Positions 29,234 to 43,074 of a stretch of DNA of 64,000 nucleotides are shown here, piece after piece. The translations under genes were made by a program, and so were the position numbers. Within the stretch, counting starts at the first letter, position 1. The number at the start of each line of letters is the position of its first letter. Source of the stretch: Auanema rhodensis. Its lineage: Eukaryota > Animalia > Nematoda. The notes under the pieces are model-generated. The model had not been told where the DNA came from. It ran no database searches and saw only the letters and a program-made list of their open reading frames with translations. Location of the stretch: assembly GCA_964057225.1 (NCBI GenBank), contig OZ059894.1, positions 1 through 64,000 of the forward strand, given 5' to 3'.

Positions 29234-29234
29234 T

Positions 29235-29771
29235 GAGGTCACGGCGCGGAATGAGGTCATTGAAACCATTAGGACGAACAAAACCAAATGTTTCGAAAGC
29301 TTGTCTAAGACCTTTATTCGCCGCGACTATCTTCCTTTTGAGGTAGATCTTGAAAAAAAACTTCGCGAAGAAGCAAAAGCCAAAAATTTGGATAATGGTG
29401 AATCATTTCTCATTGTACGCGATCTTAAACTTATAAAGATTCCACGTAAATCAACTGCCCGTCCAACCACTCCTACTCCACATGTTCTTCTTAATACTTC
29501 TACTGTTTTAAATTGCAATCTAAATGTTCAATGTCCGTCCAATGTTGATTCTGGTGTTATATCTAGCCCCCCTTCTAAATCTAGTAGGAATAGTCGCTCA
29601 ACTGGCAGGTCAAAATTTCTTTCTCTGGAGAAGAAATCTTCTATTAGCCCCAGAAGAAGAAAGAATCCACCACGTTCTGTTAAGCCTACTGTTGAACTTC
29701 CTACTAGATCAAAAAGCGGATCCGATACAACATCTCTATCTCGGTCCTGTAACAACATGTCCTTTCGTTAA
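29235..29771 (+). CDS. ORF1 (nucleic-acid-binding protein), C-terminal ~178 aa, 5'-truncated
   Basis: The frame is open from the junction (EVTARNEVIETIRTNKTKCFESLSKTFIRRDYLPFE...SPRRRKNPPRS...MSFR*) and is homologous to element B ORF1. The track's TTG start at 29301 is not a real start. Confidence 0.85.
   Translation, partial: EVTARNEVIETIRTNKTKCFESLSKTFIRRDYLPFEVDLEKKLREEAKAKNLDNGESFLIVRDLKLIKIPRKSTARPTTPTPHVLLNTSTVLNCNLNVQCPSNVDSGVISSPPSKSSRNSRSTGRSKFLSLEKKSSISPRRRKNPPRSVKPTVELPTRSKSGSDTTSLSRSCNNMSFR
29757..29771 (+). promoter_or_regulatory. Putative +1 programmed ribosomal frameshift site (AUG UCC_UUU_CGU_UAA), element A
   Basis: The 15-mer is identical in both elements, ORF2 lies in the +1 frame, and the motif matches the influenza PA-X UCC_UUU_CGU shift site. 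Confidence 0.7.
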
Positions 29772-32607
29772 AACCCCTTCTTCACCATGCTCGCTTTTTC
29801 CTCATGTCCCTGTCGAATTATCAGTCCACTGTTACAATGCACGTTCTATTCTCAATAAGCTTCATTTCCTCACAACCATTCACTCTATTTCATCCCCTGA
29901 TATTATCGCCATATCGGAATCTTGGCTGTTTTCTGATTTTTCTTCTGATCATCTTCCCTTAAATGATCATTACAACATATTCAGAGCAGACAAGCATTCT
30001 TCTCGCGGCGGTGGTACTCTTTTGTTTTTAAAAAAACAAATTAACTCAATCTTACTTTCCTCCTCACCTCTCTACTCCTCTGTTCAATATGTTACAATCC
30101 TTCTCACCTCTATCAACTCGGTTTTCTCCGTTTGTTACCGTTCCCCTTCTGCTTCTCACTCTGATTTCTGTTCCTATCTCTCGGATCTCAGTGGTCATAT
30201 ATCAAATCGCTCTTTTTTTGTTACAGGCGATTTGAACTTTCCTAATATCAATTGGGATCTTCTTCAGTCCTCACTCTCATCTCCTTCTAGTAAATCAATT
30301 ATTCAATTTCTTCAAAGTAGTCATTCTGACCAACTCGTTAATTTTCCTACACGTGGTAACAACATCTTAGACTACATTATCACAAACAATCCTTCAATCA
30401 TATCTAATATATCACGCTCCCCTCCATTGGGTAACTCCGATCACTTCTCGGTTACTTTCTCCATCATCATAAACATTCCTGTATCCCCTACGGATACCTT
30501 TCCTTTCTCTTCCAAAAGCCTCTCCAACAGTTCCTCACTATCTAACTTTTCTCAACTCAATTTCTATCGAGCCGACTTCAATGCTATTAATCGTCATCTT
30601 GTCAGCATCGACTTCTCATTGGTATTATCTGGTCTTTCCCCTCTTGACTCCTACTCCAAATTCATCAACATTCTCCAATCCATAATCTCTGTATTTGTTC
30701 CTCACAAACAACCTAGGCGTAGGAGCAAAGTTGACCGCAATATCGCAGATCTCTACTGTTACATCAAAAAACTTAGTTCATCCATCTGCCACCGTGACGA
30801 GCTCCTCCGCAAAAAACTAACTATAAAACTGGACAGACTTATTAAACAAAAGTCTATTTTGGAAGAAGAACAGATTGCTTCAACCAATAACTCCAAACGT
30901 TTTTATCGCTTCTGTAGAACTCGTCTCGGTGGATGCTCTTCAGATATCCCCACGATCAGATGTGGCGAAGAAGTATACTCCACAGACACAGACAAAGCTT
31001 CCATCTTTGCAGGCTCCTTCTCTGTTAAACCAAGTACTTCATCTGATTTAATCAACACCTCTTCTTGCCCTTCTTCTATCATTGATTTTATAGACATTTC
31101 TCCCGAAAAAGTCTATAAAGTTCTTTCTCATCTTCCTCTTAGAGTCTCTACTTCTTCTGACGGCATTCCCTACTACTTTCTCAATCAGTGCGCCTCTACT
31201 CTTTGCTACCCACTTGCCTTTATCTTTCACAATCTACTTGTTTCTTCTTCATGCCCTCCGGACTGGAAGAGAGCTTGGATCCGTCCTGTTTTCAAATCCG
31301 GAAATCGCTCTAATCCTTCAAATTATCGCCCTATCTCATTAACACCAAGTCTTTCTAAAGTTTTTGAACGACTCATCTCACCTCCACTTCTCCACTTTGG
31401 CATTTCAACTGGATCTATATCTGCCCACCAACACGCTTTTCGTCCTAAACGTAATACCATATCAGCAATCATTAACAATCATATTGCTTGGAGATCATGT
31501 TTAGATAAAAACATACCAGTCTATACTGCTTTCATAGACTTCTCTAAAGCTTTTGATCTAATTGATCACTCGGTTCTTTTTCACAAATTTAAAACTATTG
31601 GTATCTGCGGTTCTCTTCAAACCTTCCTTAAAAACTTCATCACTGGTAGATCTTACTCAGTTCTTGTCAATGGTTCTTTCTCCACTTCTGTTAACTTATC
31701 TTGTGGTGTTCCACAAGGCACTGTTTTGGGCCCTCTCCTATTCCTTTTCTACATTAATGACATTACGTCTTCTCTCCCTGAAGATGTTCATCCTACACTT
31801 TTTGCCGATGATCTCAAGTTATACAGTACTAATCCGGTAAGTCTACAGATTGCCTTAAACACAATCAACGCTTGGTGTAAAAATAATGGAATGATGGTCA
31901 ACACCACCAAATCCAAAATTATGATAGTTTGCAATAATAGCTCAACCCTCAATACCATTGAGCCATTTACCTTTGGTGAGTTTCCTTTGAACTTTGTGCT
32001 CCATTATAAAGATCTTGGTGTTCTAACTGATTACAATCTTACATTTGATAGTCACATAAACGCCATCAGTTGCGCCGCTGCCCTTAAATGTCGCATCCTT
32101 CTACGCTGCTTTCACTCTAGGTCACCTCCATTTATGTTTAACCTTTTTTGCAGCTACGTCCGACCAATCCTTGAATATGCATCCGTGATATGGTCTCCTC
32201 AAGTATCCAAAAAAATATCTCGTATTGAGATGGTTCAGAAAAAATTCCTACGAGCAGTCTTCTCAAGAGCAGGAATTTTTTCAGACTACAAAAGTCAGCT
32301 CACTTTTTTGAATGCTCAAGAACTATCAACCAGAAGACAGGTAACTGATCTAGGTTTTTATTTTTCTCAAATTAAAGACGTATCAACTGACAGTATTTTA
32401 AGAATTTTTCAAGCTAAACATTTCACACACTCTCTTCGCAGACACCAATGGAATATCGACTATCCTGATCTTCGGAAAGTTGCAACAAGGAATGGTATCG
32501 AGTACAGAGGCATCAAAACTTGGAACGATTTACCTGAAAACCTTGTCAACCTTACTAATGTTCATAATTTCAAGAAACATTTACTCTCTGCTCCAATAGA
32601 TTTGTAA
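29764..32607 (+). CDS. ORF2: APE endonuclease + reverse transcriptase, intact (~947 aa from the proposed shift site; frame open from 29524)
   Basis: APE motifs CYNARS, IAISESW, RGGG, YRSP, GDLN, PTR..ILD, SDH. RT motifs YRPISL, IDFSKAFD, GVPQGTVLGPLLF, FADD, YKDLGV. CR1/L2-like C-terminus (RPILEYAS.IWSP, WNDLPE). No RNase H or CCHC knuckle seen. Confidence 0.95.
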   Translation, partial: FVKTPSSPCSLFPHVPVELSVHCYNARSILNKLHFLTTIHSISSPDIIAISESWLFSDFSSDHLPLNDHYNIFRADKHSSRGGGTLLFLKKQINSILLSSSPLYSSVQYVTILLTSINSVFSVCYRSPSASHSDFCSYLSDLSGHISNRSFFVTGDLNFPNINWDLLQSSLSSPSSKSIIQFLQSSHSDQLVNFPTRGNNILDYIITNNPSIISNISRSPPLGNSDHFSVTFSIIINIPVSPTDTFPFSSKSLSNSSSLSNFSQLNFYRADFNAINRHLVSIDFSLVLSGLSPLDSYSKFINILQSIISVFVPHKQPRRRSKVDRNIADLYCYIKKLSSSICHRDELLRKKLTIKLDRLIKQKSILEEEQIASTNNSKRFYRFCRTRLGGCSSDIPTIRCGEEVYSTDTDKASIFAGSFSVKPSTSSDLINTSSCPSSIIDFIDISPEKVYKVLSHLPLRVSTSSDGIPYYFLNQCASTLCYPLAFIFHNLLVSSSCPPDWKRAWIRPVFKSGNRSNPSNYRPISLTPSLSKVFERLISPPLLHFGISTGSISAHQHAFRPKRNTISAIINNHIAWRSCLDKNIPVYTAFIDFSKAFDLIDHSVLFHKFKTIGICGSLQTFLKNFITGRSYSVLVNGSFSTSVNLSCGVPQGTVLGPLLFLFYINDITSSLPEDVHPTLFADDLKLYSTNPVSLQIALNTINAWCKNNGMMVNTTKSKIMIVCNNSSTLNTIEPFTFGEFPLNFVLHYKDLGVLTDYNLTFDSHINAISCAAALKCRILLRCFHSRSPPFMFNLFCSYVRPILEYASVIWSPQVSKKISRIEMVQKKFLRAVFSRAGIFSDYKSQLTFLNAQELSTRRQVTDLGFYFSQIKDVSTDSILRIFQAKHFTHSLRRHQWNIDYPDLRKVATRNGIEYRGIKTWNDLPENLVNLTNVHNFKKHLLSAPIDL

Positions 32608-32781
32608 ACCAAATACTGTAGATAATGTTCTCACCCCTCAAAAATCTTTTTTGTTTTCTATTTTATCAGGCTTTTTTTTATTTGTAGTTCGTTCTTTTTC
32701 ACACTTGTTTATGACCACATGGCAACAGTCCACCATTTATTTTTCTTTGTCCCTTCTGAACTCTTGTTACTTCGTCACTAT

Positions 32782-32911
32782 TCCTATAGACATTAGTCAT
32801 ACGGATCGGGCGCTAGTTACCTCCAAATTGCTAGAACGGGCTTGCCTCAGATCACGAGTACCACCGTACCTAACAACCACACTAGTGAGGTCAGCCATCG
32901 TGCTGAACAAA
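32782..32911 (+). ncRNA. Conserved structured cis-RNA element (hairpin + pseudoknotted domain + hairpin) in the 3' UTR of element A
   Basis: Aligns with 42710-42838 with compensatory base changes in three helices, while flanking UTR sequence is poorly conserved. Confidence 0.75.
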
Positions 32912-33069
32912 CCCCATGCATACAACAAGAATTTTACTTGGCGGACTGTTCACTATTGATCTTAAATAAGCGAGCTCTTATCGAACTGGCAATATTAAAA
33001 ATCCTTTTTCATGTTCTTATTGAATGGTTTTTAATTTTTTTCACTCAATTACTTAACAGCTATTTGTCT

Positions 33070-33108
33070 TAACCTGTGATATTGAACAATAAACATTAAA
33101 CATTAAAC
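33070..33108 (+). terminator. Conserved 3'-terminal motif TAACCTGTGAT..GAACAATAAAC with AATAAA and a (CATTAAA)2 tail
   Basis: AATAAA at 33088-33093. The motif is shared with the end of element B. Short tandem-repeat tails are typical of CR1/L2 LINEs. Confidence 0.75.
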
Positions 33109-38918: not shown

Positions 38919-39758
38919 AACACCACCCATAACTCACCTCTTCTTTCTTCTTCCAATGTTGCATGCCAAATCCAAAAAATTAGATCAGAGGAGACAAAGT
39001 ACGATTATCGTTGTAAGAGAGCCCTCTGGTTCCGTGTACCAGTCTCTTGCCCGGATTTACCTTCTGACCCTTCTTCTTTACTGAAACTGGTCATTGAGAA
39101 ATCCAACGACACTACTTTGTCAACTCTCCTTAACACTAACCAAATAACCATTACACGTTGCATCCTTAAATCTAAATCCCCAGGCCCACTCATTATTACT
39201 TGTCCATCGGTTGAATTGCGGGATAAGATCATAACATCTATCAAAGCAAATAAGACTAAATGTTTCGAATCTTTATCTAAAACTTTTGTACGTCGCGACT
39301 ATCTTCCTTTTGAAATTCAACTGGAAAACAACCTTCGCGAGGAAGCAAAAGAAAAAAACAAAAACAACACTAAGTCTGTCTTTTTGGTACGAGATCTTCG
39401 ACTTATTGAAGTTTCCCGCAATCCAGCCGATCCTCCAAACCCTCAAGTAGCTCCCACTTCTTCTTGTAATCAAACTCCTAAAATACCATCTATTCCAAAC
39501 GTTCCATTACCAACACTCCATTCTCAAACTCTCACATCCCCAACTCTTTTTTCTAGCCCCCCTTGTAAATCTGGTAGAATGAGCCGGTCGAAGGAAAGAC
39601 AGAACCGCACGTCAAAAGACAAGCGTTCTTCTGTTAGCCCAAGACGTCGCAAAAATCCACCACGATCTGCAAAATTAACCACAGATCAAATTACCAGATC
39701 TGTTAGCATGAACAATACATCTCAACGTCTCACGTCTGACAAAATGTCCTTTCGTTAA
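38919..39758 (+). CDS. ORF1, C-terminal 279 aa, 5'-truncated; RRM/CTD-like region plus Ser/Pro/Arg-rich basic tail
   Basis: Manual translation is open from the junction (NTTHNSPLL...RCKRALWFRVP...PGPLIITCPSVELRDKII...TFVRRDYLPFE...MSFR*). The spacing resembles the L1/CR1 ORF1 RRM-CTD signatures (PRPIIVKF, IFI..DL). Confidence 0.85.
   Translation, partial: NTTHNSPLLSSSNVACQIQKIRSEETKYDYRCKRALWFRVPVSCPDLPSDPSSLLKLVIEKSNDTTLSTLLNTNQITITRCILKSKSPGPLIITCPSVELRDKIITSIKANKTKCFESLSKTFVRRDYLPFEIQLENNLREEAKEKNKNNTKSVFLVRDLRLIEVSRNPADPPNPQVAPTSSCNQTPKIPSIPNVPLPTLHSQTLTSPTLFSSPPCKSGRMSRSKERQNRTSKDKRSSVSPRRRKNPPRSAKLTTDQITRSVSMNNTSQRLTSDKMSFR
39744..39758 (+). promoter_or_regulatory. Putative +1 programmed ribosomal frameshift site (AUG UCC_UUU_CGU_UAA), element B
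   Basis: The ORF2 frame is closed upstream by TGA at 39709-39711 and has no ATG until after the endonuclease domain (~40519). The motif is identical to element A. Confidence 0.72.
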
Positions 39759-42578
39759 CACTGTCACGTCTTCAACCCCCCCTGTCTCACATCCTACCAG
39801 CCTCTCAGTTCAGTGTTTTAATGCACGTTCTATTCTTAACAAACTTCATATACTATCCCACGTTATTTCTTTATCCACTCCTGATATAATTGCAATATCA
39901 GAATCATGGCTTTTTCCTGAGTTCGATACCCACCTACTCCCATGTAAAGATACTTACACTATTTTTAGAGCCGATAGGTGTCTCTCACGTGGTGGTGGTG
40001 TTGTCCTCTATATTAAAAGTCATATCAAACCTTTTCTTCTTTCCTGTTCTTCTCCTCAATCTTCTATACAATTCATTAACTTACTCATACCTTCACTTAA
40101 TGCTGTTTTCTCACTCTGTTATCGTCCTCCAACAGCTTCTCATTCAGATTTCATTTCGTTTCTTTCTGATCTACGTAAACAAATTTCCAAACGATCGTTC
40201 TTCCTAACGGGCGATCTAAATTTTCCTAAAATCAACTGGGACCTCGGTATTTGCTCTCAACCATGCTCCTCTAGTAGATCTATTCTTCAATTTCTCAACG
40301 ATAGCTGTTCTCATCAGTTGGTAAAGTTCCCTACCAGAGGCAAGAGCATTCTTGATTATGTTATCACTGATAACATATCCAGTGTAGGCAACATATCCCG
40401 TTCTTCCCCCCTCGGCTCCTCGGATCACCATTCTGTGGTTTTCCAAATTGTTTCAGACTCTTTTCAGTTAGCTAATACAATCAGCTCTTCTAATACTTTG
40501 TCTCCGGTAGCATTACCTATGTTTTCTGATCGCAATTTTCAAGCTGCTGACTACAATCTCATCAATCATAGAATAGCCAAAATTGATTTCGCTAATCATC
40601 TCTCCGGTCTCACTCCTTTAGATTCTTACTCTGAACTTGTTCACATTCTTCACTCGGTCATTGATAGCTGCGTTCCCAAAAAACAAGAAAGAAGAAAAAA
40701 GAAGATTGACCGAGATATTTTAAAACTCTCATCTCATATAAAAAAACTCAGTTGTTCTTATCATCATCATGATGAATCCCGTCGTAAAAAACTTTCACAT
40801 TCTCTTGATAAACTTATCAAGAATAGATTGGCTTCGGAAGAGGAACGTATTGCCAACTATAATAATTCAAAACTTCTTTACCGCTTTTGCAGAACCCGTT
40901 TGGGTGGCAGCACTTCAGATATCCCAAATCTCAAAATAGATAATGATTCTGTTTCGTCTGATTCTGACAAAGCTTCTATCTTTGCTACTACCTTCTCTGT
41001 TCGCCCCCTTCCTATCTTTCTACCACATGCTCCTCATTCCTCTTCTTCTACTATTATCGACTTTATTGATGTCTCCCCTCTCAACGTTCACAAAATTCTC
41101 TGTCAGTTACCTCTTCGGGTATCAACATCCCCAGACGGAATCCCTTATTTCTTCCTAAAAAATTGTGCTTCTACTCTCTCTCAGCCTCTGGCCTTTGTTT
41201 TCCACAATCTACTTGTTTCCTCCTCTTGTCCTCCTGACTGGAAAACAGCTTGTATTCGTCCCGTTCATAAATCAGGACTTTCTTCTAACCCGGCTAATTA
41301 TCGTCCTATTTCTCTCACATCCAGTCTGTCTAAAGTTTTTGAACGTCTTTTGCGTTCACCTCTTCTTGACTTTGGTATTTCCTCCGGCTTTATTTCTCCT
41401 AATCAGTTTGCTTTTCTTCCAAAACGCAATACTGTATCGGCAATTCTTAGTAGTCATGTTCTCTGGAGATCTGCTGTAGACAAGAAAAAACCTGTTTATG
41501 TTGCCTTTATTGACTTTTCTAAGGCTTTTGATCTCATAAACCATTCCGTTCTGTTAGCTAAATTAAAATCAATTGGCATTGACGGCTGTATTCTCACTTT
41601 TCTCAAAAACTTCATTACTAATAGATCTTTCTCTGTATTAGTTAATTACTCTCTATCCGTCACAAATTCTTTGCCCTGTGGAGTTCCTCAGGGGACAGTA
41701 CTGGGTCCTCTTCTTTTTTTATTTTATATAAATGATATTACATCAAATTTACCTGATGATGTACATCCAACTCTTTATGCAGACGATCTTAAACTAAGCA
41801 GCACAAATCCGGTAAGTTTACAACTAGCTTTGAATATTCTAAAAACTGGTGTCTATCTAACGGTATGAAAGTTAATACTTCCAAATCCAAAGTTATGATT
41901 ATATCGAGTACCACTACACCAAGAACAAACACAATTTTCAAATTTGGAGACATTTCTTTAGCTACAGTATCATCATATAAAGATCTAGGTGTGTGTACAG
42001 ACTATAATCTCTCTTTTAACAGTCATATAGACAGAATTTCTAACATTGCTGCTCACAAATGTCGTGTTATTTTGCGTTGTTTTTACTCAAGATCACCAAC
42101 TTTGATGTTCAAACTTTTTTGCTGCTATATCCGACCGATTTTAGAATATGCTTCAGTTGTATGGTCTCCTCAGAATAACAAAGATAAAGCGCGCATTGAG
42201 TCTGTCCAAAAAAAGTTTTTAAACGCTATTTTTAAGAGAGCCGAAATAGCTTTGGATTACAAGAACCAGCTATTGTTTCTTGGAGCCGAGGAGCTAACGT
42301 TTAGAAGACTACTAATTGATCTCGTTTTTTATCATAATCAGATTACTAAAAATGTTCCAGAAAACAACCTTAACTTTTTTACTACCAAGCACTATGCTCA
42401 TTCACTACGTAGACATCTATGGAATGTTGAATACCCTGATCTTTGGAAGAGCGAAACAAGAACTGGAATAGAATACAGAGCTATTCAAATCTGGAACACA
42501 CTCCCTGAAAACATCGTTCAACTAAGAAACACTTCCAGCTTCAGAAAACATCTTTCTATTAATCTTAACAATATTTAA
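39751..42578 (+). pseudogene. ORF2 (APE endonuclease + RT) of element B, broken by one 1-nt deletion at 41841-41845 (real lesion or homopolymer error)
   Basis: The frame is open 39712-41868 (CFNARSILNKL, IAISESW, RGGG, GDLN, SDH, YRPISL, YADD) and continues in the 41865-42578 frame. Adding one A restores LNILKNWCLSNGMKVN, colinear with element A LNTINAWCKNNGMMVN. Confidence 0.9.
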
Positions 42579-42709
42579 CCTTTCTCTGTTATTGTAACTT
42601 GAAATCTTGTTTATGTATATTCCTCTATTTACAAGCATTTAAGCCTCAAGCTATGTTAAAGTTAGACAGTTCCCTAGTTTACCTCTGAGACCTGTTACTA
42701 CGCATTTTA

Positions 42710-42838
42710 TCCTATAGACATTAGTCATACGGATAGAACGATAGTTACCTCTTGCTGTCAGAACGGGCTTGACTCACATCAAGAGTTCCACCGTACCTGT
42801 CAGAATACTATAGAGGTCAGTGATCTACACTGAACAAA
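42710..42838 (+). ncRNA. Conserved structured cis-RNA element in the 3' UTR of element B
   Basis: Homologous to 32782-32911. The first 24 nt are identical (TCCTATAGACATTAGTCATACGGA) and the stems covary. Confidence 0.75.
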
Positions 42839-43040
42839 TCAACTCTTCTTTATCAAACTAGAACTGATTCGAAACCTTAACAAACAAGTAGTGCTGCTCA
42901 CTATCATTGTAAAAGAAAATATGCTGAACCTGTCTCTTGTACATATATTTTTTTAGTCAATTATTACAAGTATGTTTGTATTGTAAGGTTCTTTTGAATA
43001 TCTGCAATTTTCCCGATTTATTAACTTTGTTTTCCGATTA

Positions 43041-43074
43041 TAACCTGTGATTCGAACAATAAACCCGTTCAAAC
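43041..43074 (+). terminator. Conserved 3'-terminal motif with AATAAA, element B
   Basis: TAACCTGTGATTCGAACAATAAAC, with AATAAA at 43058-43063. Confidence 0.72.

Follow-up and report, generated by a model that had tools for sequence, protein, structure and literature searches.

The 3′ untranslated regions (UTRs) of two LINE insertions in a stretch of Auanema rhodensis DNA carry an RNA domain which, on the evidence of covariation between aligned copies, is a real structured RNA outside the catalogue of Rfam. The sequences very strongly favour a nested four-way junction, in which helix P0 closes the junction and a P1–P2 arm, a P3–P4–P5–P6 arm and the P7 hairpin extend from it. The fold recurs in ten lineages, distinguished by sequence and by the open reading frame (ORF) upstream: nine families of CR1-like LINEs and one Ty3/gypsy-type LTR retrotransposon. 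All evidence on the domain is drawn from a single genome (181 Mb in 112 contigs).

A 176-bp satellite with a G+C content of 32% makes up the window, i.e. the whole 64-kb stretch that was analysed, as a single long array. Gaps in the satellite BLAST show that the array is broken twice, at 29234–33106 and 38919–43072, each time by a non-LTR retrotransposon with an endonuclease of the apurinic type (APE) and a reverse transcriptase (RT). The two elements and their RNA domains are as follows:

29234–33106, plus strand: LINE copy A, with APE and RT, identified by the satellite BLAST gap, its ORFs and Pfam RVT_1 and Exo_endo_phos
38919–43072, plus strand: LINE copy B, of a diverged family, identified by its ORFs, Pfam and the satellite BLAST gap
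32764–32911, plus strand: four-way-junction RNA domain of copy A, 148 nt, identified by a full-length covariance model (CM) match of 166.5 bits and by structure counts
42692–42838, plus strand: four-way-junction RNA domain of copy B, 147 nt, whose minimum free energy (MFE) structure is the consensus fold (z = −3.65)

ORF2 of copy A (29524–32607) is intact and 1027 aa long, and that of copy B is in pieces (40318–41868 and 41865–42578). Their ORF2 relatives from other organisms show at most 34% identity. The 3′ ends of both copies meet the identical base of the satellite monomer, with a 2-nt ambiguity at the copy A junction (33106–33108). LINE families A, B, B2, D, E and I have this end point in common (..AAAC followed by satellite GTGTACATTTAATTAGC), as read at window positions 33106–33108 and 43072–43074 and at loci L025, L066, L070 and L100. 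Families F and G (L073, L075) adjoin the satellite in reverse orientation and at a different position, and family C (L023) is located outside the satellite. Tandem arrays of another kind are found on contig 3 (6.74–7.10 Mb), where more than 50 SL1-like RNA genes are spaced at ~252 or 504 bp; these genes score 54–62 bits, which is under Rfam's cut-off, and their presence agrees with a roundworm source.

A conserved block common to both 3′ UTRs had been proposed from the bare sequence, and it is borne out: copies A and B are 74–77% identical within the block, amid poorly alignable flanks (38% identity from the stop codon to the block and 45% just 3′ of it). All strings quoted for the block are indeed present in the window where they had been placed. 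Of the limits first given to it, the 3′ ends (32911 and 42838) stand, but the true starts are 18 nt further 5′, at 32764 and 42692 instead of 32782 and 42710. The domain opens there with TTGTTACT and closes with CTGAACAAA. The 5′ strands of two helices, TTGTT of P0 and ACU.CG of P1, lie 5′ of the earlier limits.

A BLAST search of the genome with its own block gave 40 scored matches that fall into identity classes of 96–100% and 77–79%. A CM built from ten BLAST-found copies then retrieved at least 150 full-length copies, with scores from 171 down to 46 bits. Forty representatives of the CM score tiers were sampled, with the 46–48-bit matches left out, and 52 copies were fitted to the model to give alignment A3, which has 50 distinct rows. 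Families A, B, B2, C, D, E, F, G and I have an RT ORF upstream that ends in a common ..EYRxIxxWNxLP.. tail. Among these nine LINE families the RT halves are 43–92% identical and the domains 60–92% identical, and the domain tree and the RT tree agree. The domain is 146–154 nt in size, begins 100–210 nt past the last stop codon and is in sense orientation in every carrier; from its end to the end of the element there are 195 nt in copy A and 234 nt in copy B. A CCCC(C)TG motif directly follows it in most LINE families (window 32912–32920; L023, L025, L070, L073, L075), and a GCAACAGT-like motif is found ~45 nt upstream in A, C and D.

Short tandem copies of the domain were considered as SINE carriers and rejected, as they consist of a truncated LINE 3′ end and satellite monomers in a higher-order repeat; no SINE with the domain was found among the sampled copies. 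On contig 4 (~2.667–2.674 Mb; L013–L015, L020) the higher-order repeat is 1351 bp long, with a unit made up of a 475-bp 5′-truncated LINE 3′ end, domain included, and about five satellite monomers. A similar array of ~3260 bp is present on contig 3 (L016–L019).

The helices of the junction, in the numbering of copy A, are as follows:

32764–32768, plus strand: 5′ strand of P0, UUGUU, paired with AACAA at 32906–32910; 5 bp, closes the junction
32769–32774, plus strand: 5′ strand of P1, ACU.CG, paired with CG at 32811–32812 and AGU at 32815–32817
32782–32805, plus strand: P2 hairpin, UCC-UAU-A-GAC (loop AUUA) GUC-AUA-C-GGA, in which both bulges are conserved and the loop hardly varies
32819–32823, plus strand: 5′ strand of P3, ACCUC, paired with GAGGU at 32887–32891; general form ACCUC(Y)/(R)GAGGU
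32828–32834, plus strand: 5′ strand of P4, UUGCUAG, paired with CUAACAA at 32870–32876; 7–8 bp
32836–32848, plus strand: invariant core AACGG-GCUUG-(C)CUC, i.e. the P5 5′ strand CGG, the unpaired GCUYG and the P6 5′ strand
32892–32905, plus strand: P7 hairpin, CAGC (loop CAUCGU) GCUG, with both-side changes in all four pairs

In the LTR retrotransposon (family H), P0 reads UCAUU/AAUGG, with two pairs swapped on both sides. P1 covaries at pairs 9–53, 10–51 and 11–50 (A-U / U-A / G-C; G-C / A-U). P2 is paired in 98.9% of alignment cells and has both-side changes in four of its nine pairs. A single unpaired U precedes P3, which reads ACCUCC/GGAGGU in family C, AUCUCC/GGAGAU in D, UUCAUU/AAUGAA in H and ACUAC/GUAGU in I. 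P4 becomes UUACCAG/CUGGUAA in F and G and UUGUACAG/CUGUACAA in H. P5 is CGG/CCG (3′ strand at 32864–32866) and P6 is ACUC/GAGU (3′ strand at 32856–32859), with a variable loop beyond it and with the variants ACUU/AAGU in E, F and G and ACCU/GGGU in H. P7, which abuts the 3′ strand of P0, changes to CAGUG/CACUG in B and CGAC/GUCG in H. Copy A carries two mismatches, UxU in P1 and CxA in P4. The 5′ hairpin, ACCUC/GAGGU, UUG.UAG/CUA.CAA, (A)CGG/CCG(U) and the 3′ hairpin, all read earlier from the bare sequence, are true helices, and wider sampling upholds their covariation. The helix reported as CUC/GAG is also real, but it has 4 bp, ACUC/GAGU. The first alternative that RNAalifold offered for P6, GCUUG/CGAGU, was rejected: families F and G break it, and ACUY/RAGU covaries instead.

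Standard pairs occupy 94.6% of the 2228 cells of A3, versus 31–35% in slid controls with the 3′ partners moved by 1–3 columns. Both-side changes occur in 27 of 45 pairs, compared with 3–7 in the slid controls. The covariation score reaches 0.424, compared with 0.06–0.11 in these controls, and none of 500 shuffles attained the observed values. By helix, double changes are found in 6/6 pairs of P3, 4/4 of P7, 3/5 of P0, 3/6 of P1, 4/9 of P2, 5/11 of P4–P5 and 2/4 of P6. Because A3 had been fitted to the model, the test was repeated in a structure-blind manner with MAFFT and RNAalifold on 16 representatives. This run recovered P0, P2, P4, P5, P6 and P7, and 15 of the 29 pairs that it gave are compensatory; the loss of P1 and P3 is due only to the misalignment of family H by MAFFT in that region. 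The single-sequence MFE structure is the junction in B, C, D, F, G and H (z of −2.2 to −4.4), and it is not the junction in E (z = −0.8) or A (z = −0.06). The claim that the LINE 3′ UTR holds a new structured RNA is supported by strong covariation over ten lineages. Many copies are young and near-identical within families, as would be expected if the likeness were due to recent common ancestry or chance and the domain had no function. This explanation is refuted by the pairing-preserving double changes, and the block is kept while the flanking UTR is unalignable between families, so that its probability is vanishingly small.

The sequence-only reading also contained a pseudoknot, in which CUAGU (32813–32817) pairs across P3 (ACCUC/GAGGU) with the following strand:

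32881–32885, plus strand: ACUAG, 3′ strand of the proposed crossing helix, in the variable linker between P4 and P3

This part of the proposal fails. In the 50 distinct sequences of A3 the crossing helix pairs in 46.4% of cells, compared with 47.1% in a control slid by 2 columns, and it has two pairs with double changes, which is no more than in shuffles. A position-tolerant scan of 13 representatives found a 4–6-bp complement in A, A3, B, B3 and H. At a like relative position the complement measures 6 bp in A (shuffle p = 0.009), 5 in B, 4 in B3 and 4–5 in H (CGAGU/ACUCG), which speaks for the pseudoknot; in C, D, B2 (L066), E, F, G and I the scan found none. The AGU of the proposed strand faces an ACU 45 nt upstream, directly after P0, in a nested pairing present in 48–50 of the 50 sequences. 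The next P1 pairs inward covary as A-U in B, U-A in C, D, F and G, and G-C in I, and one step further inward G-C alternates with A-U. The crossing helix and the ACU/AGU pairing are mutually exclusive and the former is as frequent as its slid control; it is thus not a feature of the family. Furthermore, the one-nucleotide linkers on each side would strain the crossing geometry. The UxU mismatch in P1 of copy A weakens the nested alternative and favours the pseudoknot in that copy, which combines an intact ORF2 with the weakest fold of all families and the best alternative pseudoknot-type complement. Overall, the pseudoknot is improbable as the working fold or as a second conformer competing with P1, and an alternative pseudoknot-like conformer is possible in lineages A, B and H only.

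While the helices vary, the bases in loops and bulges hold and are fixed or nearly so across the ten lineages. In P2 these are the loop with its closing pair (CAUUAG) and the two bulges; in the long arm they are the runs AGAACGGGCUYG.C and, on the opposite strand, C.CCGYACCU. The P3–P6 arm contains two asymmetric internal loops, AA/YAC between P4 and P5 and GCUYG/WMCW between P5 and P6, and the invariance earlier noted for unpaired linkers holds for GCUYG, WMCW and AC. A kink-turn reading of the GCUYG loop was discarded, as the needed G-A is missing from the opposite strand. Covarying helices combined with fixed loops make a specific protein-binding platform a well-supported prediction from the alignment. 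The conserved parts of the two long arms are at comparable distances from the junction, so side-by-side packing is conceivable, and the arms may form one composite surface in this way.

Natural hairpin ribozymes also have a four-way junction with two arms bearing internal loops, and some retrotransposons carry ribozymes. The domain resembles natural hairpin and twister-sister ribozymes in its junction and in the conserved internal loops of its arms, which could dock, and could on this ground be a self-cleaving ribozyme. Unlike these ribozymes, it matches no model and has no recognisable catalytic core motif: Rfam 15 contains no ribozyme family that matches at E ≤ 10 for copy A or E ≤ 1 for six variants. 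Its position would make cleavage counter-productive, as the cut would leave the coding RNA without its 3′ priming end in the LINEs and without the polypurine tract (PPT) and LTR in the LTR element. The lack of a ribozyme model match, together with a cleavage ~200 nt before the 3′ end that would detach the ORF, makes this reading highly improbable. The earlier judgement by eye that the domain fits no hammerhead, HDV, twister, pistol or hatchet consensus is corroborated, with twister-sister and hairpin ribozymes added, by Rfam searches of the window, copy A and the six variants, all of them empty, R2 included: no family matches in the whole window at gathering score, none around copy A at E ≤ 10 and none in the six other variants at E ≤ 1. 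When the core motif was used as a pattern to scan collections of metagenomes and of viral and prokaryotic genomes, only chance matches in GC-rich DNA came up, and none of them passed the CM. Protein coding was rejected as an explanation of the conservation, since stops occur in nearly every frame per family and no frame is open across families.

The reverse complement folds about equally well (z of −2.3 to −4.6), which would be compatible with a structure that acts in the complementary strand, i.e. in minus-strand cDNA or an antisense transcript. The balance of pair types over the whole fold, 14 G-U versus 11 A-C, is too even to tell the strands apart; it becomes 14 versus 6 without the doubtful A78–N109 pair. 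As the domain is in sense orientation in every carrier, and always within the transcribed 3′ UTR, the sense RNA is the natural candidate. We know of no precedent for a functional cDNA structure of such kind, and action in the complementary strand is very improbable.

Nearer to the 3′ end, the nine LINE families have two extra short blocks in common, TGTTCNTATTGTAAGG and AACCTGTGAT...GAACAATAAAC, which form a separate stem:

33012–33094, plus strand: terminal stem of copy A, block 2 (33012–33027) with block 3 (33071–33094), followed by the (AUUAAAC)n tail
42973–42988 and 43042–43064, plus strand: terminal-stem blocks of copy B, which pair around a variable loop

The stem consists of UGUUC/GAACA, AUUGUA/UGUGAU and GG/CC, encloses a variable loop of ~55 nt and is located just before the tail repeats. 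RNAalifold on the nine LINE families gives it 15 pairs, mostly invariant, two of which have changes on both sides. Stringent LINEs place their RT-recognition hairpin at this terminal position (PMC4176376, PMC1636434), and the stem of blocks 2 and 3 probably serves the nematode LINEs as their terminal recognition stem.

Like the tail stem-loop of UnaL2 and ZfL2 (PMC4176376, PMC1636434), the four-way-junction domain is a cis RNA element of LINEs whose tails consist of short repeats in place of poly(A). The UnaL2/ZfL2 element, however, consists of one hairpin placed at the extreme 3′ end, and in the nematode LINEs the place directly before the tail repeats is occupied by the block 2/block 3 stem, not by the domain. 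The domain was rightly placed ~200 nt from the 3′ end and described as larger than a typical terminal hairpin: it lies 195 nt (A) and 234 nt (B) upstream and is three times larger. Stringent L2-clade LINEs discriminate cognate tails via family-specific loops (PMC4176376), whereas the loops of the domain are invariant in nine LINE families with an RT identity of 43–92%.

The 3′ UTR of R2, whose core is bound by the R2 protein (PMC11194090), is another parallel. It too is a structured region, ~150–250 nt long, conserved in structure above sequence, located upstream of the priming end and carried by a non-LTR element with a specific insertion site. The nematode domain likewise combines compensatory conservation with a site-specific element, given the common satellite site of A, B, B2, D, E and I. 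The two RNAs have no sequence or model similarity in Rfam, and the domain differs from R2 in being a nested junction without a conserved pseudoknot, in the invariance of its loops across families and in its presence in an LTR element.

That LTR element, family H, constitutes the 68–80-bit tier of CM matches. None of its 16 sampled loci has an RT-LINE ORF upstream, and most have an integrase ORF with the zinc-binding Integrase_H2C2 domain, the rve core domain and a GPY-type tail. The domain begins ~210 nt past the pol stop codon; ~260 nt beyond it is the polypurine tract AAGGTGGGGGGA, followed by a ~440-bp repeat after which the copies diverge. Its location between the pol stop and the PPT with the 3′ LTR implies one domain per genomic RNA. 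Ty3/gypsy-type elements are primed by tRNA inside the particle and do not use target-primed reverse transcription (TPRT). The family H domain is 55–60% identical to that of each LINE family, keeps all invariant loop bases and has lost no helix; several of its helices exceed those of the LINE versions in length. The copies are too alike to reveal selection within the LTR lineage. Some copies of family H are located within ~150 nt of Pol III genes, namely a 5S rRNA gene, a tRNA-His gene and another tRNA gene (L090 2387–2448; L096 21–92; L098 61–142), which suggests that the element targets the neighbourhood of such genes.

No LINE donor of the family H domain was found among the 16 sampled matches in its score tier. 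Family H has a block-2-like TCGTATTGTA, which suggests the capture of a larger piece of LINE 3′ UTR; there is no convincing block 3 in its copies and the terminal stem cannot form. The LTR copy could be a passenger from a LINE lineage outside the sampled set.

These observations bear on what the domain binds. It could serve as a handle for the RT (or ORF1p), in which case the LINE's own protein would grip the junction in cis and mark the TPRT template, and the LTR copy would be a functionless captured fragment. In the LINEs, whose RTs are homologous, the domain is located in the 3′ UTR in sense orientation throughout, its tree mirrors the RT tree, and the block-2-like motif in H agrees with such a capture. 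There are precedents in the binding of the R2 protein to the R2 3′ UTR core (PMC11194090) and of L2-clade ORF2p to a 3′ stem-loop (PMC4176376). However, the Ty3/gypsy-type copy is intact with every loop base kept, is equidistant (55–60%) from the LINE families and has a LINE donor in 0/16 matches; the loops are alike across co-resident LINE families, unlike those of stringent LINEs; and the true 3′ end has a separate stem of its own, 195–234 nt downstream. A handle for the LINE protein is thus a serious but less probable reading.

The favoured proposal, which we hold with about even confidence, is that the domain would be a binding module for a shared RNA-binding factor, most likely of the host. 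The equal fold and fixed bases in LINEs with 43–48% RT identity and in an LTR element, along with the separate terminal stem, point to a shared partner, and LINE loops that have not diverged at 43% RT identity, unlike the family-specific cognate loops of stringent LINEs, point to a partner beyond one RT. Several considerations weigh against a host factor. The conserved LINE 3′ UTR structures of R2, L2 and SART1 are RT-binding sites and give the handle the stronger prior; the LTR copy, with its block-2-like TCGTATTGTA, could be a LINE passenger; and copy A, despite its intact ORF2, has the weakest fold (z = −0.06, two mismatches).

If a host factor is the partner, the module would act post-transcriptionally on intronless retroelement RNA, and might serve in nuclear export, in evading nuclear surveillance or small-RNA silencing, or in stability and translation. 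Of the three functions first suggested for it (RT recruitment, stability and self-cleavage), a stability or other post-transcriptional element would fit best. In ENE stability elements, a downstream A-rich tract or poly(A) is clamped by an internal loop rich in U. The domain is unlike these triple-helix elements, as its conserved fold contains no such loop and the tails of the LINEs consist of short repeats instead of poly(A).

The constitutive transport elements (CTEs) of simple retroviruses offer another analogy. The CTE of MPMV is one long hairpin with two identical internal loops in mirror symmetry. The domain differs in having two different loops, AA/YAC and GCUYG/WMCW, in one arm of a four-way junction. 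An element in the human L1 3′ UTR binds NXF1 and can serve nuclear export (Lindtner et al. 2002, cited in PMC3045867). The CTE and the L1 NXF1 element (PMC3045867, PMC4829213) resemble the domain in being structured, in lying in the 3′ part of unspliced retroelement RNA and in having conserved internal loops. The domain is likewise a 3′ cis element in unrelated classes of retroelements, found in LINE 3′ UTRs and in the spacer between pol and PPT of the LTR element, and an export-type function would be useful to LTR and non-LTR elements alike. By this analogy it may tentatively be regarded as a portable module that has passed between CR1-like LINEs and the Ty3/gypsy-type element and recruits a host factor, a nematode counterpart of the CTE with a new fold. 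An export or surveillance-escape role in particular, of the kind served by a constitutive transport element, is somewhat more doubtful.

To our knowledge, few systems of structured RNA in retrotransposon 3′ UTRs have been described (R2, L2, SART1 and retroviral CTEs), each bound to one lineage. Here, one well-supported fold is common to many diverged LINE families and to an LTR retrotransposon with another mode of replication. Whichever protein binds it, the alignment is ready as the basis of a new RNA family. If the partner is a LINE protein, the domain would be a new and larger template handle that cooperates with a separate terminal stem. If it is a host protein, the domain would show how nematode retroelements pass unspliced RNA through export and silencing checkpoints, and it would provide a compact 148-nt tool for intronless transgenes.
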